Source: Mobula hypostoma
Taxonomy: Eukaryota
Direction of reading: 5' to 3'
Assembly (NCBI RefSeq): GCF_963921235.1
Contig: NC_086109.1
Location: 12,400,001-12,464,000, forward strand
DNA: 64,000 bases
Shown here piece after piece: positions 6,100 to 47,584 of the stretch. The position numbers were made by a program, and so were the translations under genes. How positions within the stretch are numbered: position 1 is the first letter of the stretch; each line of letters starts with the position of its first letter. The notes under the pieces are model-generated. The model did not search any database. It saw only the letters and a list, made by a program, of their open reading frames with translations, and had not been told where the DNA came from.

Positions 6100-6136
6100 C
6101 AGGCAGTGAACAGATGAGAAGAATCAGAATCCACAT
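6100..6136 (-). CDS. Leader exon of CD300/MDIR-like gene X (MWILILLICSLP-G)
   Basis: ATG, 12 hydrophobic codons, phase-1 G|gtgagt donor; 37 nt, same as paralogs at 34317 and 51970. Confidence 0.75.
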
Positions 6137-14431: not shown

Positions 14432-14749
14432 CCGTGCTGTTGACTTCAATCACATTTCTGCAGGGGCTGACACTGTTGGAGATGGATACATTAAGTACTT
14501 CACTGGACTTCTCTTCATTAGCATTTGAGGCTTTGCAATAATAAAGATAATTTTTGTATTTTAAGGATTGACAATGTAGATCCAGTTTATTGGTATCAGA
14601 GATCATTGAATCCACAGATGGGGTCTTTTCATACCATGAGTACTGAATGGGAAGGGATCCATGGACAGACTCACAGGACACTGACACGGAGTCCGCACAA
14701 CTTGAGCCATTTGGTGGTGAAAATCGAAGCAAAGGAACAGACACGGGTT
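14432..14749 (-). CDS. C2-type Ig exon of gene A
   Basis: cttttccacag acceptor, G|gtaagt donor, phase 1/1, 318 nt open; VSVSCES..GSLPIQYSWY...YYCKASN. Confidence 0.9.
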
Positions 14750-15239
14750 CTGTGGAAAAGAATCAGTGAACATCTGAAAATCAAACACACTGAAGATTTC
14801 AGCAGCTCTGTATCTCGACCAGAACCCACCAGTTTGGAATCTCAGCAGCTCAGCTGTCTCTCTTTGTCACTGTATCCCCGCATCTGCCTGAACTGCCATG
14901 TTTGCCAGTGTCACTGAACAGAGCAGGTCTCCAGATCAGGACAGCAGTGATGACACTGAGTATGTGTCAGTGTGAAAGTCAGAGTTACAATCTCTCTCAG
15001 CAGCAAGGAAACAGTCTAAGGTGGCACCCAACAGTTTGACTTTGGAATGGCAGTATTTCTGGGTGTCCTAGAAACCTCTACAGAATATCAAAGCAGGAAA
15101 TTGTCAGATATGTACAAAATAAATGGTGACTTTAGGGAGAGAGTATAATTGTGATTGGTTTCAGTGACCTGCAGCAGGAAGGGATCCCATTACTATTGAT
15201 ATCTATATGAAGCCAACAGGGAATCATATGAGACTGGAG

Positions 15240-15870
15240 AACCAGAAAACCATAGACCATAAGGCCTAAGACACAGGAACAGAATTAGGCCATTCAATCT
15301 GCTCCATCGTGGCTGATTTATAATCCCTCTTAATTAATCTATTCTTCTGCCTTCTCTCTGCAACCTTTGATGCCCTTACTAAGCAAAAGCCTATCAACCT
15401 CTGTCTTAAATAAACCCAATGATTTGACCTCCAGAGCTGCCTTTAACAAAAAATTCCACAGATTCACCAGCATCTGGCCAAACAAATTTCTCCTCATCTT
15501 TCTTTCAAAGGGATGTCCTACTATTCTGAAACTGTGCCTTCTGGGCTAGACATCTAGCAAGTACAGGCCCAGAGCCTTCAAACACTTCTCATATGTTGGA
15601 GCAGTTTGACTTCACTTGGAATTTAATAGCCAGATCCCTTTAGAATTGATATACAGAGATTTCTTGGGGTACAAGTCCATTGTTCCATGAGGATGGCAAC
15701 ACAAGTGGATATAATGGTAATGAAAGCATTCAGCACGCCTGGCTTCTTCATTCTACATGTTGGAGACTAAAGCTGACAAGTTATTTTGTAGCTTCATGAA
15801 ACTTTGGTTAGGGCTCATTGGGAACATAAAATGCATTTCTGGTTGTAACCTTATGGAAAGGATGTGGAGC
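15240..15870. mobile_element. CR1 remnants (minus ~15240-15590; plus ~15600-15870)
   Basis: CR1 3' end in reverse, then a TLVRAHWEH..GKDVE-like plus-strand piece paralogous to 44540-44790. Confidence 0.75.
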
Positions 15871-16183
15871 TCAGATACTTGTAGATGCACGTCAAACTCT
15901 GGAAGATTGCCAGATGTTGTAATTCCACATCTGTAAAGTCCTGTATCATTAGAGACAAGATTCTCCATAGTAACAGTAAATATTCCCTGGGATGTGTTAT
16001 CTCTGATTGCCACTCTTCCATACTGCTCATTTGTCCCAATTGTATTCACTAACGATGTGCATTGACGATCCCACATGCGGCACAAATACTTTGTGTGTGA
16101 ACGGTACATTGGTGCATAGTGACAATCGATTGTGATCGCTCTTCCCACAGCTCCTCTTACTTCATCTTCTGCCCATAAAGCAC
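15753..16183 (-). CDS. V-set Ig exon of gene A (CD300/pIgR/TREM-like); donor lost, reads into antisense CR1 to a TAG
   Basis: tttcag acceptor; VRGAVGRAITIDCHY..KYLC..QC..IFTVTMENLVSNDTGLYRCG; four Cys; homology to V-B ends at 15871. Confidence 0.9.
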
Positions 16184-16693
16184 CTGAAACTGAGGGAGAA
16201 ATTTTTCAGAAAATACACAGGTAAAATCAAATCAACACAGGGAGATTCAAGATTCAAGATTGTTTAATGTCATTTCCTGTACAAAAGTGTAGAGGAGAGT
16301 GAAATCATTGTTACTCGATTCAATGCAGCACCAAAAAAAATACGAAAGATAAAGAACATAATAATAATAAAAGAAGATGCTTTATTTAAAGTTGTGTTCC
16401 CCAGTGGCAGTGTGCCCTTGTCTATTGGTACAATTGAAGTCCATATAGACTGAGAAGACAACAGCATCGTCCCTCATCATGTGCTCACAACTCTTCACAA
16501 GTAATGACTTTTATTTGATTGGAGTCATCCTTGTCACTGCCCACTAATGATTCAGCTGGAGGCAATTGTGCAAGACATGATCTACCTGAATTTGCAAAGG
16601 CAAGATCTGATTGAGATAGTCAACATAATTTTGAGCATGGGAAATCCTCTCTCAAAAGAATTTGACTGACTTTTTTTGAAGAGATGACCGCAG

Positions 16694-17517
16694 TGTTACA
16701 TACCCCGTAACTGGGTTGCCAAACCAGCAGAAATGGACCACTCGTTGGAGTCTGGATTGCTGGGATCTAATGAAGTTTTATTAAAGAAATAAGTAACACA
16801 GTACTCTAATCGTAAGGATATAAATGCAACAGGTTAGCAATGATAAAACACACATATACACAGAACTAGGATAATAGGAATCCACCAAGCTCTATCGCAG
16901 TCTAGGGGTAAAATGTTCAGTCTCAAGTGACGCAGAGTTCAGTTCAGCTTAGTACAGTTCACAGTAATCGCTGTTGTGCAGTTGGAGAGAGAGAGAGAGA
17001 GATGCAAATTTTGATTCAAGCAGACCTTTGATGTTCTTCGCAGTTGGCTTTCGGGCGGACCCTTTTATGTCTTCTATCCCACTGTGGTCACCGACTGTGA
17101 CCCCTCCGTTCCGGATCCGACCGTTCTTCCGCAGTGAACGAAGCACCCAGGCAAGGGCAGACACACACACACCAGGTTCCCGCCGATTGTACCTTTTCAC
17201 CCTGTCCGAACCGGACCTCCAAATTCTCACCAACTTGTGGGGGCACACCGCTCTTCCAGGGTCTCGTTATCTCGTGATCTCGTGGTGTGTGTCGTGCCTT
17301 AGCGAACCTGTTCTTTTTATCCCCCTGCTGGGGTATCGCCTGTCCATCAAACTTCAAACAGTTCAGGTTCAAAGCAATCGGTCTGTCAATATTCTGAATT
17401 GTGTTTCTTTTCCGTTATCTCTCTCCTCTCTCATTAACATTTGAACGTTTCTCCATTTGTCTCCCTTATCTCTCTCTCATTAGCATCAATCTTCTGATAA
17501 CTTGGTTTGTCATCACA
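16694..17517 (-). mobile_element. Solo LTR (Gypsy-like) with 4-bp TSD (GCAG)
   Basis: TGT...ACA termini; gcag at 16690-16693 and 17518-17521; absent from the paralogous intron at ~47780; strand inferred from a minus-strand AATAAA-like motif near 16780. Confidence 0.85.
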
Positions 17518-19696
17518 GCAGGAACTGATGAGAACGGGGCAGTAGCGTTTAGCACATGAGTTTAGCAAGGCTTATGGCAAGATCTTGTATAGTAGATTGA
17601 TCTGCAATGTGAGATCTCATGGTAAGCTAGCTGGATAGATACTGAATAGGCTTGGTGGAAGGAGTCAGACTGTGGTAGTGGAGTGTTGGTTTTCTGACAA
17701 CATCTGACTTTACCACCAGTGGTGTGCCATCGGGATTGGTGCTGTTATTTGTTAACCACTGTCATTTGTCATCAATATTAATAATTTGGAATGAAAATGT
17801 AGGTGGTATAAGTAATAAGCTACGCGTATCACTGTAGTGTGGTGGACAGTGGAAAGAGTTGTCTAAGTTTACAAAGGGACCTGGAAAATGAACCAGCGTT
17901 CAGCTGCATTACTCTGTGTCAGCAAGATCCCCCCACCCTGAGCCTGTTCCATAGACCTGCGTCTGACCCATCTCCCTCTCTCCTTGGTACTACCTTCAGG
18001 CGGAAGGTGCAGGAGCCTTGGGGCCCATGCTGCAGAGTTCATCAACAGTTGATGCCCTGCAACTATCGCGCTCCTGGATTGGTTTCACTCACCTCAGCAC
18101 AGAGCTGACTCTGAAACTGTGGACTCACTTTCGGGGACTCCGTGACTCATGCTATATGTACTACTTGTTTACATCTTTTTAATTATTTGCACGATTCATC
18201 CTATTTTGCGTGTTGATGTTTGTCAGACTTTGTTGTGTGTGGCTTGTCGTGGGTTCTATTGTTTCTTTGTTTTGTGGGTATCTGCAAGAAGATGAATCTT
18301 GAGGTTGTTTATGGAACACATACTTTGATAATAAATTTACTTTGAACTTTCAACTAGGAAAGTGGTCAGTGGAACGACTGATGGAATTGAACTCAGGCAG
18401 TGTGAAGTGATGCATTTTAGGAAATTAAACAAAGGCACAACTTAAAGATGTTGACCAGACCTCACCTTGACTACCCTGTGCAGTACTGTAGACCTGATGT
18501 TCCCTCTTATCAGCCTCCAGGGGATTTCTCCAGCTGGACATATTCTCCCCCCACCTGGCTCCACACTAGCCCCCTTTCCTCCTGATCTGTTTCCACCTCT
18601 CACCCATCTCCAAAATCCACCCCATTTTCTCCCCATTCCATTTGCCTGTCGTGCTTCAACTCCCCACCCCCTAGTCCCCGACCACCTAGTGCATCCAGTT
18701 TCACACCTCCCTCTCTCCTGTTCACACTATCTCCCTCTCCACTCACTATTGATGCAGGGTCTCAATTGAAATGTTGACATTTCCCCTCCTCCCGTCCGTT
18801 TAACTGAACAATGTTAATTGTTCACTCTTAATTTCATTGTAAGCGCAACCATTCTGCAGATACTAAAGATCCAAAGCAACACGGAAAACTGCTAGAGGAA
18901 CTCAACAGGTCAGACGGCATCTATGATAATGAATAGGTTGTCGATGTTTCTGGCCAACACCCTTTTTCAGGACTGAGAAGGAAGTGGGAAATTGTTGGAA
19001 TAAAAAGATGGAAGAGGGGACGGTGGCTATCTGGAAGGTGATCGGTGAAGCCAGGTGGGTGGGAAAAGTCAAGGACTGTAAAGAAAGAATCTGATAGGAG
19101 AGTAGAGTGGACCATAGAAGAAAGGAAAGGAGGAGGGGCCCAAGGGGGAGTAGCAGGCGGCTGAGAATGGTTTCTGCCTGAAACCTCGACTATCTATTCA
19201 TTTCCATAGATGCTGCCTGACCTGCTGAGGTCCTCCAGCATCTTCTGTGTGTTGCTCTTCATTTCATTGTAGTGTGAGTTTGAGGTGATCCAAGAAGGTA
19301 GCTAAATTATATTTTCCCGCATTTTTGTTTCTGGCTTTGCAATTGTTCATAAAAACTTAATTTCACATTGTATATAAATAGTTAAATGATAAAATAATTC
19401 AAGATACATGGAGAGCTTTTGTTACTTTGGGTTTGTTACATTTGCTTTAGGGAGAAACAGTGCAGTATATTTGCCGCGAATGTGTATCTGCTTAAATTCT
19501 GTACATTGTATAGTATGAGAGCTGACTCTATTGCATCAGTCACTGCTGTCATCTGTGTAATGTTCAACCTTAGTGAAGGATGTGGTCAGAACTTCTGTTT
19601 TCTTTGATTGTCTCTCCAGAGAGAATATAGAGAAGTAACAACAGATGCTACACATTGACAGATTGTTCTGGTCTCTTCCTGCATTGCCCATCACTT

Positions 19697-20408
19697 GGCA
19701 GGATACTTGGTGTGGAGGAGCAGAGGGATCTGGGGGTACATGTCCACAGATCCCTGAAAGTTGCCTCACAGGTAGATAGGGTAGTTAAGAAAGCTTATGG
19801 GGTGTTAGCTTTCATAAGTCAAGGGATAGAGTTTAAGAGTCACAAGGTAATGATGCAGTTCTATAAAACTCTGGTTAAGCCACACTTGGAGTACTGTGTC
19901 CAGTTCTGGTTGCCTCACTATAGGAAGGATGTGGAAGCATTGGAAAGGGTACAGAGGAGATTTACCAGGATGCTGCCTGGTTTAAAGAGTATGCATTATG
20001 ATTAGAGATTAAGGGAGCTAGGGCTTTACTCTTTGGAGAGAAGGAGGATGAGAGGAGACATGATAGAGGTGTACAAGATAATAAGAGGAATAGATAGAGT
20101 GGATAGCCAGTGCCTCTTCCCCAGGGCATCACTGCTCAATACAAGGGGACATGGCTTTAAGGTAAGGGGTGGGAAGTTCCAGGGGGATATTAGAGGAAGG
20201 TTTTTTACTCAGAGAGTGGTTGGTACGTGGAATGCACTGCCTGAGTCACTGGTGGAGGCAAATACACTAGTAAAATTTAAGAGACTACTAGAAGGTCTAT
20301 GGAGGAATTTAAGGTGGGGGGTATATGGGAGGGAGGGTTTGAGGGTGAGCACAACATTATGGGCCGAAGGGCCTGTAATGTGCTGTACCATTCTATGTTC
20401 TACGCTCT
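19697..20408 (+). mobile_element. Young CR1 3' fragment, same subfamily as 874-3069
   Basis: Near-identical sequence to ~2344-3060; atcactt duplicated at both flanks; empty site in paralog at ~24356. Confidence 0.9.
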
Positions 20409-20426
20409 ATCACTTCTTGAAAACTT

Positions 20427-21045
20427 CTCAACAACTATGGTTCAATAAGCTGATGAGAACAAGTGCAGAGATACTTACTTTCTTTTTCAAAATTTTTATT
20501 GATGTTATATAAATTACATGAATACAAATACAAAATTCATAATGATACGAGGAAATAATCCAGATTACATTACATTTAAATCACAGTAATATGATCACAA
20601 TATCCTATATTCCAAATGAATCATGTATAAAAAAGGATTGAATTATGAAATGAAATAGAATAAAATAATTGTATTTTATTAAAAAAAATCTACCCCTACT
20701 ACCGAAATGAGCTGGTTGGTAAAATAAAGAAGAAAAAAGAAGCTTACCTTACCATATAATATTACAATAATAATGGCTCAGATCCATACTTTAATAACAG
20801 TTCAAAAATTGTGAAAATAATTCAGAAAGGGTCCGCATAACATTAGAATATCATGTTTAGAATCAGAAATCGGGAACAACGAATCTTCCCTAGATCGAGG
20901 CACAACATAACGTCAGATAGCCATTGAACATGAGTGGGCGGGCCGGCCTCCTTCCACTTGAGCTAGAGCAGAGATACAAAGCACTTTCAGCAAAGCATTT
21001 CTGTTTCAGCAACTAGAACAGTGACAACAGTAACAATTTGGTGAA
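20427..21045 (-). pseudogene. Disrupted Lys-TM exon copy (RNALLKVLCISA[L1]LVLISLLNHSC*)
   Basis: Paralog of 56008-56117; acceptor AG absent; L1 inserted mid-TM. Confidence 0.65.
20475..20967 (-). mobile_element. 5'-truncated L1 with 10-bp TSD (GCAGAGATAC)
   Basis: LKWKEAGPPTHVQWLSDVMLCLDLGKIR ORF2 C-terminus; TSD at 20465-20474 and 20968-20977. Confidence 0.85.
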
Positions 21046-23389
21046 GAAAGGTGAAAAGGCCATTTAACCATTGTGTTTAAACCTAATCCCAATCCTGTGC
21101 ATAACCGTAAATACAACAGTGAGATTGTAAAGTGCTTTCCATTCAGTTGTTGGGAAGTTATCCAAGAACCGCAGCTCTATAAGATGGGATATTGGTCAGA
21201 CTGCACTTGGAATATGGCGAACAGTTTTGAGCCCCTTATCTATGAAAGGATGTGCTGTATTTGGAGAGGGTCCAGAGGAGTTTCCTGAGAATGATCTCAG
21301 AAATGAAACAGTTAATGTGTGAAGAATGTTTGATGGCTATGGGCCTGTACTCACTGGAGTTTAGAAGAACGTTGGTGGGGGTGGGGTAGCGATTCTCATT
21401 GAATTCCTCTTGAATAGTGAAGGGCCTAGAACCTAGATGGGGTATACGTGGAGAGAATGTTTCCTATCGTGGGCAAGTCTCTGACCAGATGGTGCTAATT
21501 CCATGGAATTCATTGTCACAGATGGCTGTGGAGGCCGAGTTATAGGGTATATTTAAAGCAGAGGTTGATTGTTTTTTTGATTAGTGAAGGTGTCAAAGGT
21601 TATGGGGAGAATGGGCTTGAGGGGAAAAGTTAATGAGCCATTGTAGAATGATGAAACAGACTCAAGGGGCTGAGTGGCCTAATTCTGCCCTATGATTCAT
21701 TGCTTTATGGTTTGAATTACTTAGGCAATGAAGGAAGAGGATGGAAAAGTTCATTTACATGAGGCGTTCATTTATTCTGTTTTGTCAGACAAGTAAAAAG
21801 CACTGAAGTTCTAACCATATCCTTTGAGAATTGCTTTGGGACAGGGAAAGGTTCTCTATCAGAATCACAACCAGGTTTAATTTCACTGTCTTCTGATGTG
21901 AAATTTGTTGTCTTGCAGCAGAAAAATCGAAGCAAGTTCTTGCCCTCAGACCATTAATGAGCTCAGGTTCAACAGGCCTAGGTTCACAAGTGGCACCACT
22001 GCATCTGGAATTATCTGCAGCTAATCAAATCCCATCAGATAACCTGACCTGAAGGGGTCAAGAGCTCCAAACAGTCTCTGGTGTTACTGCTTCACATCCT
22101 CACAGAGCAGGTGAAGATTATTATGTGATATTCCACGTTGTCAGTGGGGCATTTCAAGGTTCATTTCTCCCAGTACACAGGAGTCTTGCATAGTAGACTG
22201 GTGGTCCCATTCCATTCCGCAGTCTAAAGACAAACTGGGTACGTTAATTGATCTTTGTACATTGTCCTGTGATTAGAATATGGTTAATCAGGTTTGTCGA
22301 GGGTTGCTGGGCCGGGAAGTCCTACTGTGCACTCTTTTGGTAAAAAAAATAAAGGGATGACCTTGCATTCTGAGGCTGATTGTTCATGCAAGATTTCCCC
22401 ATGAGGAAACTATATTTTATCGTATACATCAAAGTATCCCAAATTCTTGTTCTTCATAATGGGCTCCAACATATTTCCAACCACTGAAGTCATACTAACC
22501 AGTTTACAATTTCCTTTTATTGCCTCCCTCCTTTCTTAAAGGGAGGAGTGACATTTCCAATTTTCCAGTCCTCTGGAACATTCCAGATTCTAGTTATTCT
22601 TGAAAGGTCACCACTAATGCCTCCACAATTTCTTTACTACCCCTTTCAGAACTTGGTGTGCAGTCTGTCTGGTCCAAGTGACTTATCTATATTCAGACCT
22701 CTCAAATTCTCAAGTACCTTCTCCTTATTAATAGCAACCATGCTCACTTCCGTCCCCTGACATTGCTAAATTTCTGTCATTCCCACTAATATTTACTATA
22801 TTATACGGCCTTCTTTTTGTTTTATGAAAAAACAACCCCATTTTGACATGAAATGGTTTGTGCATGCAGACAACCCCCGTAGTTTCTAGTCCTTATAGAA
22901 TCAGAGAGCACAGTGAATAGACAAATCACACTTGTCCAAGGAGAAGACATTCTTCTCTTACCTATCTCACCCACGTGGTTGCCGTGACATTTGACACTGC
23001 ATACCTTTGCTCAGATTCTCAGTTGCTAACTTCCCAGTTTCCCTGTTCACCTGGTTAGATCTTTCAATGTTAGTCAAAGTGTGATCCATCCAGATTCATG
23101 CTGTGTGATTCACTGGGGCAGATGAAGTCTGAGGAGAGCTTCAGTACAAGGGATAACAGCTCTCATGTGTCAGACATATTGGAGAAGTAATACAGAATCA
23201 GAAACACAATCAGGTTTAATGTCACCAGCACACTGTATACCGTGAAATTAGCTATTGCAGTCATAATCAGGAAAATTCGATGATTACTATAGGAGCTGTA
23301 TGCAGAACCAGGTAGGTCAGAAGAGTTAAAAGAAAGCACTTGGCCCAAAGACCCGTGTGGTTTCTGGGTCCTTTAAAAGAATAGAACCA

Positions 23390-23872
23390 TTGTACCCTGC
23401 CACACATGTCGTAAAAGGCGACTAAAGAGGGTTGGGCAGAGGGTTAGCAGCCCAATCCTGTAAAAATAATTATTGCTACAGAAACGTCAGCAGCATCAAA
23501 ACCAAGCCAGCCAGTCTTGGGAGATGTAGGGCCCCTTTTGGAGAGCCGTATGATGTGGAAGTGAAAGCCGAAGGAAGCTCCTTCACTGAAAAACCTACTG
23601 TCAACCAAGATTACCTCCACAATTGGCATCTGGAATGTGAGGACCCTGTATGAAGTTGGGAAAACTCTACAAGTGGAATCCTCAGGGCAAGCGAAATCGA
23701 GGTAGGCCCAGGTCCAAATGGCAGAGGGAAGTGTTAACCGACGCCAGGAGAGTGGGAATGACATGGTCACAGCTGGAGAGATATGCACAAGACAAGTTGA
23801 TCTGGAAAGAGGTTGTTGATGGCCTATGCTCACTAGTGAGTTGAAAGACGGAAGAAGAAGAAGAAGAAGAAA
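23390..23872 (+). mobile_element. RTE-clade LINE fragment
   Basis: WNPQGKRNRGRPRSKW...WKEVVDGLCS C-terminus; (GAA)n tail. Confidence 0.75.
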
Positions 23873-23949
23873 TGGCCCAAAACTTTGACTCTCTATTTAT
23901 TTCCATAGATTCTGCCTGACCTGCTGAGTTCCTCCAGTGGCTTGTGTGT

Positions 23950-25570
23950 GTTGCTTTTCATTTCATTGTAGCGTGAGGGTTGAGGTGATCCAAGAATGTG
24001 GTTAATTTTTGTTTCAAACTTTGCAATTGTTTGTAAACATTTAATTTCACATTGTGTAGAAATAGATAAATGATAAAATAATTCAGTATACACAGACAGC
24101 TTTTGTTACTTTGGGTTTGTTACATTTGTTTTAGGGGAAAACAGTGCAGTATATTAGCCGTGAATTTATATCTGCTTAAATTCTGTACATTGCGTAGTAT
24201 GAGTGCTGGCTCTATTGCATCAGTCACAGCTGTTCACTCTCAATGAAAGATGTGGTTAGAACTTCTCTTTTCTTTACTTGTCTTACAGAATTTAGAGAAT
24301 TGTCAATGTTTTGCTAAATTTTGACAGATTGTTCTGGTCTCTTCCTGAATAGCCCCATCACTTCTTGGAAAACATCTCAACAGCGGTGGGTCAATATGCT
24401 GGTGAGAGCGAGTGTAGAGATACAAAACATCTTCAGCAAAGCATTTCTGTTTCAGCCAGTAGATCACTGAACAACAATAAAAACTTTGTGAAGAAAAGTG
24501 AAAAGGCCATTTAGCCACTGTGTTGGAACCTAATCCCAAACGTGCACACGTGTAAATAGAACGGTGGGATTCTAAAACGTTTTCCATTCTGTTGTTGAGA
24601 AGTCATACAAAAACAGCAGCTTTGTAAGGTATTGGTCACACTGCAGGTGGAAATTGTTGAACAGCTTTAGGTGGCTTATCTTCAAAAAGATATGCTGTAT
24701 TTGGAAGGGTTCCAGAGGAGGGGCACGAGAATGATCCCAGGAATGCAAGTGTTAATGTGTGAGGAGTGTTTAACGGCGCTGGGTCTGTACTCACTGGAGT
24801 TTAGAAGAATGAGGGGTGGGTATTCTCTTTGAAACCTCTTGAATAGTGAAGGTCCTAGAAACTGGATGGAGTGTACGTGGAGAGGTTGTTTCCTCTGGTG
24901 GGAGAGTCCCTGACCAGAGAGCAATGATTCTATGGAATTAATAGTCACCGATGGTGGTGGAGGCCATTGGGTATATTTAAAGCAGAGGTTGATAGGTTTT
25001 TGGTTAGTAAGGGTGTCAAAACTTAAGGAGAGAAGGTTGTTGACGGGGATGATAAATGAGCCATTATGGAATAGTGCAACAGACTCAATGGGCTGAATGG
25101 CCTTCTTATGCCCTGATGACTCATTGTCTTATGGTCTGAAGTAACAGGTAATGCAGGAGAGGATGGTCAGTCTATTTACATGAGGCATCCATTGGCACTT
25201 CCCTGAACCCTGTTTTGAAGGACAAGTAAAGAGTACAGAAGTTCTACCATATCCTTTGAGAATGGCTTTGGGATATCCTGGGACAAGTAAAGTTCTCTTT
25301 CAGCATCAGAATCAGTCTTATTTTCACTGTAATCTGATGTGAAATATTTTGTTTTGCAGCAGTAAAAAACACAAAGCAAGCTCCTTCCCTCAGACCATTA
25401 ATGAGCTCAGGTTTAACAGGTCCAGATTCACAAGTGGGACCACTAGTTCTGGAGTTATCTGTAGCTAATCAACAGCCATCAGATAACCCTGAGCTGAAGG
25501 GGTCAAGAGCTGCAAACAGTCTCTGGTGTTACTACTTCACATCCTCACAGGGTATAATGTGATATTCCTC
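23950..25570 (-). repeat. Segmental duplicate copy 2 with degenerate Lys-TM exon (~24380-24490)
   Basis: RNALLKMFCISTLALTSILTHRC*; acceptor cacag changed to cacaa; 1 nt shorter than the 56-kb copy. Confidence 0.8.
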
Positions 25571-26276
25571 CTTGTCAGTTCAAACTTCAAAATTCAAATT
25601 ATATTTAATATCAAAATGCATATATGTAACAATATACTACCCTGATTATAATTGCAAAACTATAGTTCACCTTCTCTCATTTTCGAGACCCTTTATTGTA
25701 CATTCATGGGTTACGGTCACAAATCAGTACTGAGAAAAGTTACACCTTCTATTTGCAGATTCACACCCTGACGACCAATGCAAGCTCACTCAATGTCATC
25801 TGCAGTTCACTCATTTTATTCAGCATTCAACTTTTATTTCCATTGCCTGTTCTCATTTAAGACCTTTGTGCAGTGACTGGAAAATTTCATGCTACTGTAA
25901 TTCTGAAATTCTGAAAAGTTGAGAGGAATCAGAATCAGGGTTATTATCACCGGCATGTGATGTGAAATTTGATAACTTAGCAGCAGCAGCTCAATGCAAT
26001 ACATAATCTAGCAGAGAGAGAGAAAAAAATAAGTAAAATAGAATGTAATAATAAATAAACAAGTAAATCAATTAGATATATTGAATAGATTATTAAAAAA
26101 TGTGCAACAACAGAAATACTGTATATTAAAAAAAGTGAGGTAGTGTCCAAAGCTTCAAAGTCCATTCAGGAATTGGATGGCAGAGGGGAAGAAGCTGTTC
26201 CTGAATCGGTGTGTGTGTGCCTTCAGGCTTCTGTACCTCCTACCTGATGGCAAAAGTGAGAAAAGGGCATGCCTTG

Positions 26277-31450: not shown

Positions 31451-31640
31451 TGCAACATTTCCTTCCTGTCTATGTAGCCCGTTTGTTTCCACTAAAACTG
31501 AATATTGGTGACCAATATTCCATAGCACCAATACATTGTATGTGACTGGTTTACTGTTGCATAGGGGAATTTGATTGTGATCACTTTTCCAACAACTCCT
31601 CTTACCCCATCTCTCCATCTCCACAACTCCATGTCTCTCT
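31451..31640 (-). pseudogene. Degenerate, 3'-truncated V-set exon of gene C
   Basis: GVRGVVGKVITIKFPYATVNQSHTMYWCYG aligns to V-A/V-B; B-strand Cys lost, frameshift, second half missing. Confidence 0.75.
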
Positions 31641-34160: not shown

Positions 34161-34316
34161 ATCTCTTCCCATGACAGATGCTGCTTGACCTGCTGAGGTC
34201 CTCCAGGAGTTTCTCTGAACTCCAGATTCTGATAGCTTTGGTGTCTGCACATAATCATGCACCGTTCTGCAAACTAACACTGATTATAAAAATGTCCCAT
34301 ACTGGTTTTCACTCAC

Positions 34317-34353
34317 CAGGTAGGAAACTAATCAGAAGAATCGAAATCCACAT
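34317..34353 (-). CDS. Leader exon of gene C (MWISILLISFLP-G)
   Basis: ATG, hydrophobic 12-mer, G|gtgagt donor, 37 nt. Confidence 0.8.
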
Positions 34354-35129
34354 TGTTTTATTCACAGAGACCCAGTCAGCACTTGTCTGTTCACAGAGTG
34401 AAATTACTGTCAAATAAAAATAAGGAAGAAGAGGGCAGGAAGTCTAATCAGAAACCACAGTGAGCCATCTTAGGCTGATGTGTGATCATATGAAAAGCAA
34501 CACACAGAAAATTCTGGAGGAACTCAGCAGGTCGGGGAGCATCTAGGTATGTGAACATACAGTCGATGTTTCGGACCGAGACCCTTTATCAGGACTGAAA
34601 AGGAAAGGGGAAGACACCAGATTGAAAAGGTGAGTTAAGGGGATGCAGGCTACCTGGAAGGTGGACGGTAAACCCAAGTGGGTGGGTAAGGTAAAGGGCT
34701 GGAGAGGAAGGAATCTCATGGGAGATGAAAGTGGACCATTGGAGAAAGGGAAGGAGGCAGACACCCAGGCAGAAGCGATAGGAAGGTGGGATGAGGTAAA
34801 AGACCAGAATATCAAAAGTTCTTAATTATATTTAGCAAAATAAAAGACAATTCCCAATGACTGATAGAAATTGTGAGAAAAATCAAATTGTGAGACACCA
34901 ACAACAGCAGATGTTATAATCTGGCACAAGAATAAATTGCTGGAGGTGTCATAAAGCAGGGGCTTAATCCAAAATGTTGACCACTCTGCATCTGCAGATG
35001 CTGTCTGACTTCCTAAGTTCCTCCAGAAGCTTTTTTTCTTGCCTGAGTTAAAATGTCAGCTGTGATAAGTCATCGAGGAAAGGGTTCATGGCAAAAAGTT
35101 AACTGAGGAAAAGAAAAGACATGATCTAA

Positions 35130-35560
35130 AGGTTCAGTGGTTGTTCTGAACAAACATCAGAATTGGCAAGAAATGCAATGTAAATGACTTTGGCTGCAGG
35201 ATGATTTTAGGTGCCAGATGAGGTAGTTTGAGTATCTCAGAAACAGGTGATCTCCTGGGTTTAGCACACATTACAGTTTCTAAAGTTACAGAGAATGAAA
35301 ACAAGTTTAAAAAACAATTTGTGAGTAGCAGCTCTGTGGGTGAAAATGTCTTGTTATTGAGGGAAGTTAGAGGAGAATGGTCAGACTGGTTCAAGTTGAC
35401 AGGAAGGTGACAGTATCTCAAATAACCATGTGATACCACGTGAAGAACATCTCTGAATGCACAGGACATTGAACATTGAATTGGACGGGCTACAACATTT
35501 GAAGACCACAAACATACAGTCAGTGGCCACTTTATCAAGTACTCCTGTTGAGGGTGTATT
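35130..35560. mobile_element. Tc1-like non-autonomous remnant
   Basis: agtatctcagaaac.g.tgatctcctggg motif and cagtggccacttta TIR-like sequence. Confidence 0.55.
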
Positions 35561-38159: not shown

Positions 38160-39300
38160 ACAGCACATTTACAGGCCTTTCAGCCCACAATATTGTGCCG
38201 ACCATGTAACCTAATCTAGAAACTGCTTAGAATTTCTCTACCGCATAGCCCTCTCTTTTTCTGAGCTCTATGTAGCTATCTAAAAGTCTCTTAAAAGACC
38301 CTATTGCATCTGCCTCTTACACCATAGCTGGCAATGCATTCCACACACTCACCACTCTCTGAGTGAAAAACTTACCCCTGACATCCCCTTGTGCCTACAT
38401 CCAAGCACCTTAAAGCTATACCCCCTTGTGTTAGCCATTTCTGCCCTGGGAAAAACAAACCTCTGGCTATCCACACGATCAATACCTCTCACTATCTTAT
38501 ACACCTCTATCAGGTCATCTCTCATCCTCTGTTGCTCCAAGGAGAAAAGGCCGAGTTCACTCAACATGTTCCCATAAGGCATGCTTCCCAATCCAGGGAA
38601 CAACCTTGTAAATCTCCTCTGTTCTCTCTCTATAGTATTCACTATAGAGAGAGTGGCCATTCAGCCATACTAGCCTACACTTAATGTAGATGGGCTCAAT
38701 GGTTGGGAGGGTTTTTACCATGATGTACTGAATCTATTACCTTTTGTAGGATTTTCTGCTCAAAGGCTTTGGTGTTCCCATACTGGGCCGTAATGCAGCC
38801 AGTCAGCACACTTTCCACCACACATCTATAGAAGTTTGCCAAGGTTTTTGATGTCATGCCGAATCTCCACAGATGCCTGAGTAAGCAGAGGTGCTGTCGT
38901 GCTTTCTTTGCAATTATATTTATAGGATGGGTCCAGGACAAGTCCTCTGAGATAGTGACACCCAGGAGTTTAAAGTTACTGACCCTCTCCACCTCTGATC
39001 CTTTAAGGATTGCTGGCTCATAGACCTCTGATTTCCCTCTCCTGAAGTCCACTATCTGTTCCCTGGTCTTATTGACATTGACTGAGAGGTTGTTACTATT
39101 ACACCACTCAGCCAAATTTTTCAATCTCCCTCCTCTCTTGCTGATTCATCACCAACTTTGATTCAGCCCACAATAGTACTGTCATCAGTAAACTTGTATC
39201 CGGTGTTGAAGCTGTACTTAGCCACACAGTCATAGGTGTAAAGCAAGTCAAGCAGGGTGCTCAGTATGCATCCCTGTGGTACTCCTGTGCTGATGGAAAT
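38160..39300 (-). mobile_element. CR1 3' fragment (38160-38640) and Rex1-like fragment (38690-39300)
   Basis: QRRFTRLFPGL..DLIEVYKI; WCNSNNLSVNVNKT..FKLLGVTISEDLSW. Confidence 0.8.
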
Positions 39301-40521
39301 TGCTGAGGATCAACACACATAAAATGCTGGAGGAACTCAGCAAGCCAGGCAGCATCTTTGCAAAAGGGTACAGTGGATGTTTCAGGCTGAGATTCTTCAT
39401 CAGGACTGCCGATTAGTAGTGAGTAATCTATGTTTTCTAACTTCTTGATTACAACAATGCAGTTCCCCTTCTGTCATTTTCAAAGAACGTGATTTATTGT
39501 ACAATCGTGGGCTACAGTCACAGATCGGCTTTGAGATAAACAATATCTCCTGTTTCTAATTTCACACTGCATTGACCGATACAAGCTGCAACGTGTGTGT
39601 GACTCATTTTATTCAGCTTCCTATACTGTATTAATTTCTATTGTTCTCTGTCCTTTAACACCCTTGTACAGTGACATCAATTGTACCCGTATTGAATAAT
39701 TCTTCACAGCAATCGATGTGTGCCAATATTTCCAAACACAAAAGCAAAATAAGATGGTTATTAATAAAATAAGATAAGAAAAAATAAGATGCGTGTTTGA
39801 TCATAGCAGCTTCTATGAGCTCAACTAAATGTGTTATTGTCCTTTTTAAATGTATTATTTTCAATCACATCTCCCTGCAAGATATTAAGAACTTAAAGTA
39901 CTGCAGGTCGACCCCGTCAGTGAGTTGCTTGTTGGTGGCGAAACTGAAAGAGCTGGACTTGGTGCGGACCGTGAAGCCGCCTGTGTCAGAGGGGCTTCGT
40001 TGCGCAAAGAAGGTGTGCAATCTAGCAGGAAGTTCACTGATTTATTGATGGACAGCAGAGGAGTTGTGTGGCCTCGGCTTCAAGCCACAGAGTTGCATGT
40101 TTCCAACCCCCCCGGAGAGAGGCATCAGAGCCGGTGCGCTCTGCCGCAGGCGGTGTGGTGCAGCGTTCAAACTGCAAGCGATGCTGCCCCCTAGTGTTCA
40201 CTCAGCCATATTGTATGAAACTGCAGATTTCCGCAACATCGTGATCTTTTGTTTGACGGTATTTTACTGATATCTTATATGTGCTTGCAATCTTACATGT
40301 ATTAGTTGTGTGACTATTGGTACCAGAGTAGTGCTGTTTTGTTTGGTTGTATTCATGCGTATTCATGTGTGGTTGAATGACAATGAAACTTGAACTATGA
40401 GCTATGAATATGTGCCTATCTGAAATGAAATCTGCGGATAATAGAGAGACCCAGAATGTCAGACAGCTTCGGAAGAGATAAAAGGAAAGCTAATACTTCA
40501 TAAATTTGTTCTGATGGAATA

Positions 40522-40565
40522 TCAGAATGAGTAATTAACTGTTTCCCTTTCCTGAACATTCACAG
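40522..40565 (-). CDS. Possible terminal cytoplasmic exon of gene B (VNVQERETVNYSF*)
   Basis: cttccctttgttgtcaacag acceptor, phase 1, Tyr motif; no clear upstream donor. Confidence 0.25.
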
Positions 40566-41262
40566 CTGTTGACAACAAAGGGAAGTCCAGGAGCCTGAAT
40601 GTGATCTATTCCCCATGAATGCATTTCAGTTCGAAACACAACCCGTTTTTGATAATATCAGTTTATGAAGAAGCATCTTAATTGATTATCATTCATCGGT
40701 TATGAGAATAAACAACATCTGCAGGCAATTGAATCCATAGAATGAGTTTAACAGTGTATAAGGGTATTAATCAGTTCACAGAAACAGTATGTACGGGTTA
40801 AAATACTTGCTGGGTGATGAAGGAAACATTGGGAAAACTGCTGTTATATTGATATCAATGAGGGTAAAATGTTGGAGAAGGAATTTCAAAAAATCAAAGT
40901 CACTGCCTTGAAGGATGACAGTGGGCAGAAGAATGAAAGTTTGATCTTGATGCAAAATTGAAGCACAGTCAGTGTAATCTGGGAGACTTCACGTTACCTC
41001 CTGGACCACCGTGCTGTGAGGATCAGATTCATCACGTCTCTGGAAAAGGCAATGGTCAACCCATCAGGTTCTTCGACAATGGGATCTCTGCTTTATTTCA
41101 GATGGCCACTCACAATGGAATTTTGTCTGAAACAAGCATTCCATACATTCACATCAAGCATTCTGCACACAAGAGAGCATGTCAAAGCCGAGTTGTATCA
41201 TCTGCATAAAGCTTGGTTTGACCATAGGATAAGAAAGTATTCATGTATTTAAATGTTTTTCT

Positions 41263-41404
41263 TCAAATGAACAGTATATTTGCAAGCAATTTATCTGACA
41301 TCCATAAGCCTATCTTAGTTTCGCTTGTAAACCATGAGACTGAACTCGTGCCGATCATCAGGAGAGCGAAGAGCAGCCAACGGCCCACCTTCCATATCAT
41401 GAAA
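41263..41404 (-). CDS. Transmembrane exon of gene B, Arg type (FMIWKVGRWLLFALLMIGTSSVSWF...)
   Basis: ctcttccattttgctcag acceptor, phase 2; open 47 codons to TGA; W-x-V-x-R-W-L-L-F hydrophobic helix. Confidence 0.8.
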
Positions 41405-41933
41405 CTGAGCAAAATGGAAGAGATATAGAATCAGTGCGAGGAAATGAGGTGGCTTTGTGTTTGAAACATTTGCCTCCTGTTTCAACTGTAATCTCAGTGG
41501 AGTGGAATGATGTAAACCAGCTGAGCTGGAAGGTTCAAAGTGGAGACTAAACTAGTGTTCGACTGAAAGCGAGAGAGAGTGAGAGAGACAGAGAGAAAAA
41601 AACATTTGATTATCTGTTACAGATCTAACTACTGGGACATGACTGCAGAAAAATGAGGACTGTGAATCGGAAATTGCAAAGTGAAAATAAATTTTGACAA
41701 GTAAGTGAAGGGCAGAGGTGAGACTATGATAAAGCAATACCATTGAAGGAAGTAGACACTGCCGTAAGGATAGATGTGATAGATAATAAATGATGCGTGA
41801 CTGATGGTGAAAGGGAGAAGGGACATGAAATATGCAGACAAATTAGAATGATTAATATAGGGTGGCAGAGTGGAGATACGTCTCTACCAAAGGAGGTGTA
41901 AGGCATTATTCCCTCTGCTGGCCTACAGGTCAC

Positions 41934-42030
41934 ATTTGGGCAAGGTTTAGCACCTGCTTAGCCTCCAGATGAGAGTCATATGAAGTCATGGGTGCAGGTG
42001 GGTAAATAGAAATTTGAACAGCTGGTGCAG
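41934..42030 (-). CDS. Candidate stalk exon of gene B (AAPAVQISIYPPAPMTSYDSHLEAKQVLNLAQ)
   Basis: catttccag acceptor, phase 1 matches the V donor; weak AT|gtgacc phase-2 donor matches the TM exon. Confidence 0.4.
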
Positions 42031-42189
42031 CTGGAAATGAAGCAGAGATCCCATTGTCGAGGAATCTGATGGGTTGACCATTTCCTTTTGCAGAGACGTG
42101 ATGAATCTGATCCTCAGAGCCTGGTTGCCGAGGAGACAAAGTAAATACTCCCAGATTATACTGACTATATTAGCATTTTGCATCAAAAA

Positions 42190-44490
42190 AATGAAATCAA
42201 ATCATTAGAAAGAGATGACATAAGGACAGAAGATGTTGAATCATTGTGGATAGAGTTAAGGAACTGCAAGGGTAAAAGGATCTTGATGGGAGTACTATAC
42301 ACACCCCCAAACAGTAGGAAGGATGTTGTCTACAAATTACAACGGGAAATAGCAATGCCAAAGGGCAATGTTACAATAGTCATGGGGGGCATCAATATGC
42401 AGGCAGATTGGGAAAATCAGGTTGGTGCTGGATTTCAGGAGAGGTAATTTTTAGAGTGCCTACAAAAATGCTTTTTCGAGCAGCTCGTGGCGGAGCCCAC
42501 TGGAGGATTGGGATTTGTATAATGTCAAAGCCAACATAACAGCGAAAGAAAGGCCATATAAGAGTGCAAAGATTAGTGGGAAGGTAGAAGATTGGAAAGC
42601 TTTTAAAGACCAATATAAGGCAACTAAAGAAGTCATTCAGAAAGTAAAGATAAAATATTGGCAAGTAAGCTCACCAATAACGTTAAAGAGGATACCAACA
42701 ATTTCTTCAGATATATAAAGTGTAAAATATAGGGAAGAGTGTATACTGGACCACTGGAAAACAATGCTAGAGAGGTAGTAATGGGGGAAAACAAAATAAC
42801 GAATGAACTAAATAAGTATTTTGCATCAGTCTTTGCTGTGGAAGACACGAGCATTATAGCGGAAATTTCAGGTATCAGGGGCATGAAGTGTGTGAACTAG
42901 AGAGAACACTCTTGGGAAACTGAAAGGTCTCAAGGTAGATAAGTCATATAGACCAGTTGGTGCACACCCCAGTTGTCATGGTCTGGTCTGTGAAGTCGGA
43001 ATTCTAGTTCACGGTCTGGTCTCCATGGACTCAGGACTCCGGGTCTTCCAGCTGTCCATCGTTTGGTTGAGTTAATCATAGGCACCTGATTCCCATCTTG
43101 GGGCTTGGAATATAAGAGGCCTTGGGGTTGAGTGTGGGCTGCTGGTTTGTCCTGTCAGTCCCCCTTGAAGCAACCTGCTGATGGAAGGCTAGTGAAACCA
43201 TTCGTGATCTCTGGGCCTGGTTGGAGGACCACTGCTTCATGGAGCCTTGTTGCCACTCATTGGAGTAGTCTTTGTGGTATGGATTTGGCTGTTTCCTGGA
43301 CCAGCTGAGTGGCCGTCAGCCACTCCGAACTAGGTAGGGATCCGGCTGTTTCCGTAGCCAGCAGAGGTTGTTGGCTGTAACTGTGACTTGGAGCAACCCT
43401 GAAGCAGAGATGGGACTGTTTGTTGTTCTTTGGTGTTTGTCTCTTCTTGTCCTTGCCTCTGTGGGGTAGTCAGGTGGTTTTGCTGTTGTCCTGTGGGGGG
43501 ATCTGTCTTGTCTTGTCCTTGCCTCTGTTGGGTAAGTCTGGCTGTTTTGCTCTTACCAAACAGGTGGACCTGTTCCACCTTGGTGTGGAGGGGTTTAGCC
43601 TGGCTTGTCTAAGTATAAGTCCTGGCTCTATGTCTATGTGCGATCCTGTCTCATGTTGGTGTTGTGTTAATGATGAATCCCGGCTGTTTGAAGGATAAGT
43701 CCTGGCTCAATGTTGATGTTCAGTTCCCAGTCTGCCTCTCAGCTCTAGTCTCTGAGTTATCAGCCTCGGCATTTCAAGACAAAGATCCCGCAGCCTCCAA
43801 GCTCCAAGGACCCAAGGCTCAACGCTCCTGCAGCCTCCAAGCTCACGACCCAAGGCCCCAGCCACATCCTGTCCTGAAGCCATGTCATGTCCTTGCCTGG
43901 TTCTGGGGTCCGAGTGCGAGGCAAGACCCAAGTTCTGGGTCCTTGTTAGTCTCGGGCTCAGAGTCGAAGCCTTGTCTCCTAGTCCATGGTTTCGAGTCCT
44001 GGTCCAGCCTTCCCTAGCCCAAGTCTACGTTCTTGTCCCTGCTGCTGGTCTGAATCCTGTCACGTCCCTACTCTAGTCAAGTCCTGTTCCTTGTACTGTA
44101 CTTCAGTGTCTGTGTCTCTCATTTGGGTCCATTCACAGCACCCCATTGTGACACCAGTGTTCTTAGAGGTTGCTGAAGAGATTGTGGAGGCATTAGTAAT
44201 GATCTTTCAAGAATCACTCAATTCTGGAATGGTTCTGAAAGACTGGAAAATTGCAAATGTCTCTCCACTCTTCAAGAAGTGACAGAGGCAGAAAAAGGAA
44301 ACTATAGATCAGTTAGTCTGACCACTATGGTTGGGAAGATGTTGAAGTCGATTACCAATAATGAGATCTCTGAGTATTTGGAGGCACATGATAAAATAGT
44401 CCACAGTGAACTATGGTCTGTAATGATTCCACAAGGGAAAATCTTGCCTGACAAATATGTTGGAATTTATCTCTCATTCTTCTAAACTCC
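42190..44490 (+). mobile_element. Degenerate CR1 ORF2 (endonuclease to RT), split by a solo LTR
   Basis: [36 protein letters not shown]. Confidence 0.85.
42974..44153 (+). mobile_element. Solo LTR with 5-bp TSD (CCAGT), same family as 12268-13276
   Basis: TGTCA...TGACA termini; ccagt at 42969-42973 and 44154-44158; TATA-like aatataag near 43090. Confidence 0.9.
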
Positions 44491-44539
44491 AGTGAGTACA
44501 GGCCCAGAGGTTTCAATCGCTCCTCATACATTAGGGAAA

Positions 44540-46140
44540 TTTGACATCATCTGGAGTTTAATAGTTAGATCCCTTTAGAATTGATATACAGAGAGTTTTT
44601 GGGGTACAAGTCCATTGCTCTCTGAATGTGGCAACACAAGTGGACATAATGGTAATGAAAGCATTCAGCATGTTTGCCTTCTTCATTCTACATGCTGGAG
44701 ACTAAGGCTGACAAGGCAACTTGTAGCCATGAAACTTTGTTAGGGCACATTTGGAACATAATGTACAGTTCTGTTTGCAACTATATAGAAAGGATGGAAA
44801 GGTTCTGGAGAAGGTAAAGAGCTTCACCAACATGTCACCTGGATTGGAGTATAGTAGCTATGGGGAGAAGTTGGACAAACTTGGATTGTTTTTGCTGGAG
44901 TGTAGGCTGAGGAGAGAACTGATAGAAGTTTATAAAGTTACAGAATCATAGATCAGGAAGATAATCAGGATCTATTTTCCAGGGTTAAAATAACAAATAA
45001 TGGTGAGCATGGTTTTAAGGCGATAAGGGGAAAATTTAAAGGAAGTTTGTTCACCGTTAACCTATGACCTCTGATCGTAGTCCCACCCAACCTCAGTGGA
45101 AAAAGCTTGCTTCCACTTGTCCTATCTATACCCCTCATAATTTCGTGCACCTCTATCAAATCTCCTTTTGTTCTTCTACGTTCTAAGGAATACAGTCCAA
45201 AGCTATTCAATCTTTCCTTATAACTAAGGTCTTCCAGATCTGGCAACATCCTTGTAAATTTTCTTTTCACTCTTTCAACTTTGTTTACATCTCTCCTGAA
45301 GGCAGGTGACCAAAACTGCGCACAATAATCCAAATTAGGCCTCACTATCTTATACAACTTCAACATATCATCCTATCTCTTACACTCAATACATTTTTTT
45401 ATGAAGGGCAATGTGCCAAAGTATTTCTTTACGACCCTATCTAACTGTGACACCACTTTCAACAAATTATGGATTAGTATTCCTTTTGTTCTACCACACT
45501 CCTCAGTGCCCTACTGTTCTCTTTGTAAGAACTACCCTGGTAGGTGCTTCCAGTGCAAAACCTCACACTTGACTGCATTAAATTCCATCTGCCAATTTTC
45601 AGCCCATTTTTCCAGCTTTTACAGATCCCTCTGCAAGTCATGAAAGCATTCCTCACTGTCCACTACACCCCCCAATCTTGGTGTCATCTGCAAACTTGCT
45701 GTTCTATTTAACCACATTATCATCCAGATCATTGATATAGATGCAAAGAACAACAGACTCAGTACCATACTCTGTGGAACTCCATGAGTCACAGGCCTCC
45801 AGTCAGAGAGGCAACCATCTACTACCACTCTCTGGCTTCTTCCACAAAGCTAATGTCTAATCCAGTTTGCTACCTCATCTTGAATGCCAAGCAACTGAAA
45901 CTTATTGACCTATCTCCAAAGCTGGTTTTCATCAAGTGCCTTGCTAATGTCTATGTAAACAACACCCACTGCCTTGTCTTCATCCACTTTCCTGGTAAAC
46001 TCTTCAAGAAACTTTATAAGATTGGTTGGACGTGAACTACCATGCCTGAAGCCATGCTGACTATCCTTAATCAGTCCATAGCTATCCAAATATTACATGT
46101 ATCTTAGAATGTGGCTCTTAGAACACATTCCAATAACTTT
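44540..46140. mobile_element. CR1 fragments (plus 44540-45045; minus 45050-46140)
   Basis: ORFs 44751-44951 (+), 44965-45366 (-) and 45619-45828 (-) carry CR1 motifs. Confidence 0.8.
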
Positions 46141-46154
46141 CCTACACTGATGTC

Positions 46155-46780
46155 AGACTTTATTTTTAGATTATGAGGACATGCAGTCATCTTTTATTGC
46201 CATTTAGTAATGCATGCATTAAGAAATAATACAATATTCCTCCGGAGTGATATCACAGATACACAGGACAGACCAAGACTGAAAAACTGACAAAAACCAC
46301 ATAATTATAACATATAGTTACAACAGTCCAAGCAGTACCGTAACTTGACGAAGAACAGGCCATTAGCACAGTAAAAAGTTCAAAGTCTCTCGGAAGTCCC
46401 ACATCTCACGCAGACGGGAGAAGGAAGAAAACTCTCCCTGCCATATCCGACCACAGTCCGACTCTGAGGTGTCCGAAAACTTCGAGCTCCGACCGGCCCT
46501 CCAGCACCGAGCACCATCTCTGCCAAACACTTCGACCCCGGCCCCGGCTGCCAGCAGCAGGCAAAGCCGAGGATTTTGTGGCCTTCCCTCCGGAGATTCT
46601 AGATCGCACGGTAGCAGCGGCAGCAAACCGGGCATTTCAGAAGTTACTCCAGATGTTCCTCTGTGCTCTCGTGGCTGAGTCCATCAAATCAGAATTGTTC
46701 ACGGCCCCTAGTTAACAATAACATATCACTTCACCGGAGAGGCTACGCGTGCTGCGACGCGCCGCCATCCTCTCCTTACC
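46155..46780 (-). mobile_element. (AATCT)n-tailed non-autonomous retroelement
   Basis: Homologous to 12186-13836 and 50228-50905. Confidence 0.75.
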
Positions 46781-47264
46781 GCTCTATAATTTCCTGTTTT
46801 ATGTTTAGAGCCATTTTTAAACAGCAGAACAACTGTGGTTATCCTCCAGTCCTCTGTCTTCTGTCACTAAGGATGATTTAAATACGTATGGCATGGCCCC
46901 AGTAATTTCTGCACTTGCCACCTATAGAGTCCAAGGGAAAAACTCAGCAGGCCCCGGCGATTTATCCACACTGATTTGCCTCAGGGCAGCAAATACTTTC
47001 TCCTCTGACAGGGTGACAATTCATGGAGTTCCGAGGCAGGAAAATGTGCTGAGCCTCCCACTGGAAATCAGTGTCCCGGCCCTGGGTCAGACCCTGCGCC
47101 GGGTGAGAGAATTATGAGTGGGATTTCTTTACCCTTGTCCACTCGCCACAGATCTCCGCACTGCTGTGGAGCCTCCGGATATTCCTGCTGCCCTGACTCT
47201 TTCCAGAGAAAACATGTATCAGGCATTTCAGTGGAGACATCAAGTCGAACAATGAGAAACCTAC

Positions 47265-47584
47265 CGTCAGATACTTGTAGATGCACATCACACACTGGAT
47301 GATTGCCAGATGTTGTAATTCCACACCTGTAAACTGCTGTATCATTAGAGACAAGGTTCTCCATAGTAACAGTAAATATTTGCTAGGATGTGTTACCTCT
47401 CACTGTCATTCTTCCATACTGCTCAGTTGTCCATCTGTATTCACTAACGATGTGCATTGACGACCCCACATGCGGCGCAAATACTTTGTGTGTGAACGGT
47501 ACATTGGTGCATAGTGACAATCGATTGTGATCACTCTTCCCACAACTCCTCTTACTTTATCATCTGGCCATAAAGCACCCAGAA
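47265..47584 (-). pseudogene. V-set exon of gene B, frameshifted
   Basis: Close paralog of V-A; 1-nt deletion near 47430 then TGA; KYLC changed to KYLR; acceptor tttcag changed to ttctgg; donor GAC G|gtaggt intact. Confidence 0.9.

Follow-up and report, generated by a model that had tools for sequence, protein, structure and literature searches.

Two decayed modular domain immune-type receptor genes of a devil ray share a V2 cassette and a LINE relic upstream of different 3′ exons

A 64,000-nucleotide stretch of the devil ray Mobula hypostoma genome (NC_086109.1, positions 12,400,001 to 12,464,000; hereafter the window) carries two immunoglobulin (Ig)-like genes, here called A and B. Both lie on the minus strand, as do all Ig-like exons of the span that holds them. 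An earlier reading made from the nucleotide letters (the sequence-only reading) described the two genes as one V-type module attached to different 3′ halves and attributed this arrangement to unequal recombination mediated by long interspersed nuclear elements (LINEs); the span it delimited begins and ends exactly at the end of the A C2-type exon (14432) and the start of the B V-type exon (47584).

Searched against 1.8 billion representative proteins, the V exon of gene A matched a large multi-Ig protein family from stingrays, devil rays, skates, sawfish and sharks, whose members are usually annotated as "polymeric immunoglobulin receptor-like" (pIgR-like). Modular domain immune-type receptors 3 and 5 (MDIR3 and MDIR5) of Rostroraja eglanteria were among the protein matches, and we assign genes A and B by sequence similarity to the batoid MDIR family. 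The MDIR or batoid pIgR-like proteins are paired receptors, with activating and inhibitory members. The V2 exon of A matched the Pfam V-set domain (E 1e-11, above the cut-off). The A C2-type exon (C2b) matched Ig_C17orf99, Ig_3 and Ig_2, each below the gathering cut-off, and resembles the C2/I-type domains of the family, with 85-91% identity to relatives and 63% to skate MDIR3. Both kinds of family tail are also present: an Arg-transmembrane (Arg-TM) exon (WKVGRWLLF…) in B and a cytoplasmic exon with an immunoreceptor tyrosine-based inhibitory motif (ITIM; VVYTDL) in A. The genes are clustered, with three same-strand leader exons in 64 kb and ~10-30 paralogous V/C2 exon copies in read contigs. 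No V exon was found at 1-6100, downstream of the third leader, and further exons of that gene would lie past the window start.

Exons were mapped by placing the proteins of relatives on the window by tblastn and then setting boundaries from the sequence (Table 1). Scanning with regular expressions and for open reading frames (ORFs) yielded a single intact V-type exon, at ~16.1 kb. Neither A nor B combines an open frame in all exons with canonical splice sites.

Table 1. Exons, shared blocks and repeats of genes A and B, in window coordinates
Feature	Position	Strand	Remarks
A leader exon	34353-34317	minus	MWISILLISFLP; GTGAGT donor
A V1-type pseudo-exon	31650-31350	minus	Frameshifted; first Cys replaced; first half alone recognisable
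A V2-type V exon	16189-15871	minus	ORF intact; no GT donor; cut 2 nt short of canonical end
A junction J1	15871/15870		V exon (…GTATCTGA) fused directly to LINE relic (GCTCCACATCC…)
A C2-type exon (C2b)	14749-14432	minus	ORF intact; AG acceptor and GT donor
A cytoplasmic ITIM exon	11819-11752	minus	VVYTDL; in-frame TGA at 11768-11766
B leader exon	52006-51970	minus	MWSSILLTGFLS; GTGAGT donor
B V2-type pseudo-exon	47584-47265	minus	Canonical donor ACG/GTAGGT retained
B Arg-TM exon	41404-41314	minus	SFMIWKVGRWLLFALLMIGTSSVSWFTSETK; ORF present
B terminal (tail) exon	41039-40989	minus	RRDESDPHSTVVQEVT, then stop
Shared V2 exon	A 16189-15871; B 47584-47267		90.9% nucleotide identity
Shared proximal upstream intron	A 16190-16363; B 47585-47758		84.9%
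Shared distal upstream intron	A 17520-18224; B 47786-48490		81.4%
Shared LINE-derived piece	A 15560-15870; B 44495-44802		83.4%
LINE relic in A	15560-15870		Plus-oriented CR1-like reverse-transcriptase fragment joined to minus-oriented CR1-like fragment
Continuation of A minus-oriented LINE fragment to its 3′ end	15240-15559	minus	Very high read depth
LINE relic in B	44495-44802		Minus-oriented fragment ends at ~44470 against LINE fragment 44157-44468
A-specific 1.16-kb insertion in intron upstream of V2	16364-17519		Very high-copy repeat
B-only 2.47 kb between V exon and LINE relic	47264-44797		Contains the next four features
Conserved family intron start	47264 to ~46967		
CR1-like reverse-transcriptase fragments	~46966-45060		
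Nested X repeat	46776-46164		
5′ part of plus-oriented LINE fragment	45050-44797		
Third family leader exon	6136-6100	minus	MWILILLICSLP; GTGAGT donor

Gene A is a pseudogene relic because it carries multiple inactivating lesions: the V2 donor is gone, V1 has decayed, C2a and TM exons are missing, and the ITIM exon contains a TGA. The canonical end of the V exon, retained in B, reads …GTATCTGACG/GTAGGT; that of A reads …GTATCTGA/GCTCCACATCC…, and the final two bases of the exon are therefore gone from A, together with the donor. A cryptic donor, AAG/GTTACA at 15850/15849 (nearest GT, 15849-15848), was rejected because its phase 2 clashes with the phase-1 C2b exon. No C2a exon was found in A by tblastn with the proteins of relatives, and no TM exon was found between C2b and the ITIM exon, where the only matches from tblastn and a hydrophobicity scan fall inside a repeat (X, described below). 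At the place of the TGA in the ITIM exon, the relative P0010 of Hemitrygon akajei reads through. A candidate leader exon at 18.8-19.1 kb was also discarded; its similarity is to repeats near other leaders, and no ATG-leader exon is present.

Reads were compared over gene A in four runs, all as Logan contigs, including X1, the probable source sample, and X5, a second DNA sample with a different organism code. Transcript evidence comes from the contigs of two small runs and concerns gene A only. RNA-type contigs on the A exons are 85-96% identical and therefore derive from paralogs. In one contig, the V end (15871) runs into the C2 start through one added letter, which restores the canonical …GAT G/AA CCC splice; this letter is absent from the A genomic sequence, and the contig therefore shows expression of a paralog and not of A.

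Gene B is also a pseudogene relic, because it combines a frameshift, a stop codon and a Cys-to-Arg change in the V exon with an AT donor after the TM exon and the absence of a stalk exon. The V exon has a 1-bp deletion near 47430 and a TAG at 47386-47384, and its conserved Cys is lost (KYLC to KYLR; TGC to CGC, within 47472-47483). At least 12 relatives have Arg-TM exons that match the B exon at 77-84% identity, and all alignments end at …ETK, but the donor position of the B exon reads AT (41313-41312) instead of GT. The sequence-only reading had B continue to a stalk-like and an Arg-TM exon with no C2 exon; the Arg-TM exon and the lack of C2 hold, but a stalk exon was undetectable by tblastn or by Smith-Waterman alignment with four stalk types. 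The tail-exon region of B has an inverted duplicate at 42034-42186 on the plus strand, 84% identical to 40947-41099; the plus-strand arm still reads QRRDESDPQSLVAEETK, and the two arms flank the Arg-TM exon. The suggestion that one ligand-binding domain serves different signalling ends does not apply to working genes here: both are inactivated, and the B V exon is not an intact module.

Homologies were determined by window self-comparison together with exact identity computation. Genes A and B share the V2 exon, ~0.9 kb of upstream intron and a downstream LINE-derived piece. The intron is divided in A into a proximal and a distal block by the A-specific high-copy insertion, which has a contig depth of 1e5-7e5 in both DNA samples and is among the most abundant repeats of the genome. 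The shared intron had been called intron 1, which is correct for B; in A, however, the leader lies 18 kb upstream with the decayed V1 exon in between. The intron, the V exon and the LINE piece are each homologous, but A and B are not colinear between the last two: 2,470 bp (47264-44797) intervene in B between the V exon and the LINE piece, which abut in A. Alignable homology ends at the motif GTACAGGCCCAGAG, exact at 15561 and 44496 and inside CR1-like LINE remnants, just where the sequence-only reading had placed it. Past the motif, A proceeds to a C2 exon and B to the Arg-TM exon, as described there; the C2 exon is intact and is followed in A by the ITIM exon, and the Arg-TM exon is followed in B by the tail exon, so the same V-type exon does stand upstream of different exon sets. 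The remnants by which simple loss was to be recognized were not found either: 184 C2 domain queries gave no C2 remnant in B (best E 0.065), and 19 Arg-TM tail queries gave no Arg-TM remnant in A (best E 0.16).

The first discontinuity between A and B is not in a LINE but at the 3′ end of the A V exon. At this junction (J1), the left end of which lies in the last codon of the exon, the splice donor has been removed; relative to B, J1 amounts to loss of 47266-44797. The two sides share GA, a microhomology of 2 bp that carries little weight as evidence. When conceptually translated, the first ~110 bp of the B intron match the read-through C terminus of Hypanus sabinus P0006 with a score of 90 (500 shuffles: mean 20.7, maximum 38), and the B intron start appears to be the normal sequence of the family after the V2 exon, which A lacks. 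Because B retains the canonical donor and this family-normal intron start, J1 is probably a derived deletion in A, with the ancestral V2 donor side kept in B. Relative to B in its present form, the deletion spans 2.47 kb; it would be smaller if the CR1-like fragments and nested X repeat of B (~46966-45060) were inserted later. J1 lies inside a 371-nt X5 contig that aligns gap-free to 15564-15934, with 4 differences. The junction is therefore real and occurs in the second sample as well, and a mis-join, which the sequence-only reading had named as a possible refutation, is ruled out for the A junction.

The 305-bp relic shared by A and B is a composite. Its plus-oriented part is the C-terminal region of a LINE reverse transcriptase (the ORF at 44751-44951 reads …GEKLDKLGLFLLECRLRRELIEVYKV), and its minus-oriented part begins at …YEERLKPLGLYSLEFRRMR. 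We take SYEERL…LGL.SLE.RR.RGDLI to be the C terminus of a CR1-clade ORF2, which makes "CR1-like" a reasonable label for the relic. The A and B relics appear to be copies of one ancestral composite and not independent insertions, because the composite junction is private to them (a 27-nt motif across it occurs in the window only at 15603-15629 and 44538-44564), because they are 83% identical whereas other window copies of the plus-oriented part are 60-63% identical to the B copy and diverge where the two fragments join, and because they have diverged to the same extent as the shared intron. Variant letters of the relic occur in ~11 contigs, compared with ~7-16 for the V and C2 exons, and its contig depth is 140-240 as against 1e4-7e5 for true repeats nearby. 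Since its ~11 variant copies are similar in number to these exons, the relic is probably an old family-wide feature of the intron downstream of V2 exons and not a private A/B crossover site; it probably predates the A/B split and is common to many paralogs.

The point at which the alignment of the relics stops was examined by comparison with four other LINE copies. The minus-oriented fragment of A runs on to the LINE 3′ end after an internal deletion of ~125 bp that starts at GTACT, and it is because of this deletion that the A alignment stops at 15560. The B fragment extends 25 bp further and then stops at the LINE fragment 44157-44468, which lacks its own 3′ end. The end of the B fragment is thus a genuine rearrangement breakpoint and not a retrotransposition boundary.

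We consider it most probable (about 0.62) that A and B are decayed MDIR members whose contexts differ through lineage-specific deletions and transposon turnover, processes that account for the breakpoints no less well than LINE-mediated recombination does. Gene A would be the relic of an inhibitory gene with the order leader-V1-C2a-V2-C2b-TM-ITIM, and gene B that of an activating-type gene ending in Arg-TM and RRDES tail exons. Their common unit would be the V2 cassette of the family, comprising the exon, its upstream intron and the old CR1-like relic in the downstream intron. In A, a deletion would have joined the V2 exon to the LINE relic and taken out the splice donor; in B, the intron would have been kept up to the relic, where it breaks off, with neither C2b nor a stalk exon before the TM exon. 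Because both of these exons are absent, B resembles a deletion derivative more closely than it does a productive recombinant, and it would have lost exons instead of gaining a foreign tail. Three points weigh against this interpretation: with no decayed C2 or stalk exon in B and no Arg-TM remnant in A, loss by deletion is something we infer and do not see; the lesions of B were read from the assembly alone; and recombination may have taken place at the breakpoint of the B fragment.

Non-allelic recombination between CR1-like copies of an inhibitory-type and an activating-type gene could instead have re-paired V2 with different tails before the products decayed, although we regard this as unlikely. 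It would account for homology ending inside LINE fragments in both genes, for the junction at which the B fragment adjoins a LINE piece without a 3′ end, and for the lack of a C2 remnant in B and an Arg-TM remnant in A, and it would be in keeping with the repeated re-pairing of V2 with different tails across the family. However, since the LINE copy of A reaches its own 3′ end after its internal deletion, no crossover is needed to explain the alignment stop, and the other breakpoint, J1, lies in a V exon codon and not in a LINE. As with the exons, there are many variant copies of the relic; the stalk exon of canonical V2-to-Arg-TM genes is missing from B; and no reciprocal product was seen, the parental or reciprocal loci lying outside the comparison. 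The LINE-mediated unequal recombination of the sequence-only reading therefore finds no support: the first break is an exon-truncating deletion, the second is on the A side an indel, and the relic is multi-copy. At A/B this mechanism is unproven, and the A/B case is ordinary. More doubtful still is the wider idea that the composite CR1-like relic has repeatedly served as a substrate of recombination in the MDIR clusters of rays, with A and B as fossil products of one exchange. If it were true, recurrent relic crossovers that re-pair V2 with C2b/ITIM or Arg-TM ends would constitute a transposable-element-templated hotspot of exon shuffling in a paired-receptor family, and a LINE-templated exchange point used cluster-wide would be a mechanism by which paired receptors of an early-diverging vertebrate lineage trade ectodomains.

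It is very improbable that the 305-bp piece represents two independent LINE insertions and that the true shared unit is only the V2 exon with its upstream intron, copied by cassette duplication or as a gene-conversion tract. The piece does consist of LINE sequence, many fragments of the same family occur in the window, and it lies 2.47 kb farther from the V exon in B than in A, but the plus/minus composite junction found nowhere else in the window leads us to reject this explanation, and against it, too, stand the higher identity of the A and B copies to each other than to other copies and its agreement with that of the shared intron. Least probable of all is an assembly artefact, in the form of a mis-join at the A V exon/LINE junction or of consensus errors behind the B lesions: the region is repeat-rich, short-read contigs break at its high-copy LINE parts and the B lesions come from the assembly, but the X5 contig spans J1, X1 contigs match several flanking segments exactly, and four independent lesions in B are unlikely to arise from consensus error alone.

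The domains of 225 relatives were parsed, with an A-like V2 defined by at least 75% identity. An A-like V2 is followed by an A-like C2b with ITIM tails in P0010, P0152 and P0167 and by an A-like C2b with Arg-TM in P0154 and P0171. In other relatives it leads directly to a stalk and Arg-TM (P0003, P0160 and P0200), directly to a stalk/TM and ITIM (P0201, P0203 and P0204), or to another V (P0003 and P0160). A V2 with differing downstream partners is thus the known MDIR architecture spectrum, seen here in two dead copies. In a maximum likelihood tree of 45 V2 domains (107 columns, with a weak backbone), the downstream partners are intermixed and do not cluster (Arg-TM: 3 changes for 3 rows). The A V2 joins the V2 domains of Hemitrygon P0160 (95/75), and that of B is on a long branch without resolved placement; at 107 columns, the tree is too short to settle whether A and B are sisters.

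The closest comparison is with pIgR-like genes of other Myliobatiformes (Mobula birostris P0167, P0171 and P0155; Hemitrygon akajei P0010, P0003 and P0160; and Hypanus sabinus P0154 and P0012). Identity to these is 86-89% for the A V2, 85-91% for C2b and 77-84% for the B TM exon, and architectures like that of A (V2-C2b-ITIM) and that of B (V2-Arg-TM) are both present among them. These models are open reading frames, whereas A and B are not, and B lacks the stalk mini-exon (GREYSFTTVSSA) carried by P0003 and P0160. The MDIR family was described from the clearnose skate (Cannon et al., 2006, Immunogenetics 58:362, as cited in PMC3031540). Skate MDIR3 (P0170) and MDIR5 (P0194) are 65-68% identical to the window copies in their V domains and 60-63% in their C2 domains, with the third V domain of MDIR3 at 68% to the A V2; B and MDIR5 agree in their WKVGRW Arg-TM and KRDESEP tail, and A and MDIR3 in having ITIM tails. 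The skate MDIRs are expressed cDNAs, whereas A and B are pseudogene relics in a devil ray genome, and the genomic view adds intron and LINE detail to the cDNA-based description. The V domains of the skate family are reportedly CD300/pIgR-like and alternate with C2-type domains. The skate genes are also said to form a large multigene cluster with activating (charged TM) and inhibitory (ITIM) forms that use the same domain subfamilies in different combinations, a modularity for which the family was reportedly named.

In the mammalian CD300 and KIR/LILR clusters, the same ectodomains occur in activating and in inhibitory members, and exons are reshuffled by unequal crossing-over between repeats. 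The MDIR locus resembles them in joining similar ectodomain exons either to an ITIM tail or to a charged TM within a tandem cluster rich in transposable elements, but no crossover is demonstrable at A/B, and CD300 and pIgR are only distant relatives of the MDIR family (through Pfam V-set only).

Several other repeats and gene models were noted. The unclassified X repeat is ~0.6 kb long, has an (AATCT)n-like tail and occurs in three copies (12188-12267 plus 13277-13831; 46164-46776; and 50221-50907), the one in A being split by a nested ~1-kb insertion. The C terminus of the Hypanus sabinus model P0012 (…GLCMNPYVTSDRYHSPERP…) matches the X repeat, and its annotated tail is therefore probably repeat-derived. 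The Mobula birostris model P0007 passes from a V2 domain to half a C2b domain and then to coiled-coil sequence that may resemble LINE ORF1; this model suggests that other broken copies of the family are annotated as proteins. The interval from V1 to V2 of gene A contains a ~3-kb tandem duplication (19181-22145 and 23880-25579; 78-80%), made up mostly of LINE fragments, which also matches 55473-57253 upstream of B. The youngest repeat pair of the window, 2344-3063 and 19696-20410, is 93% identical over 720 bp and is a plus-oriented LINE reverse-transcriptase fragment of the same family as the relic.

For annotation, A and B should be called pseudogenes. The locus also carries a caution, as shared transposon fragments beside exons can mimic recombination junctions. 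What it mainly documents, with its two dead copies, is birth-and-death turnover in the known MDIR family.

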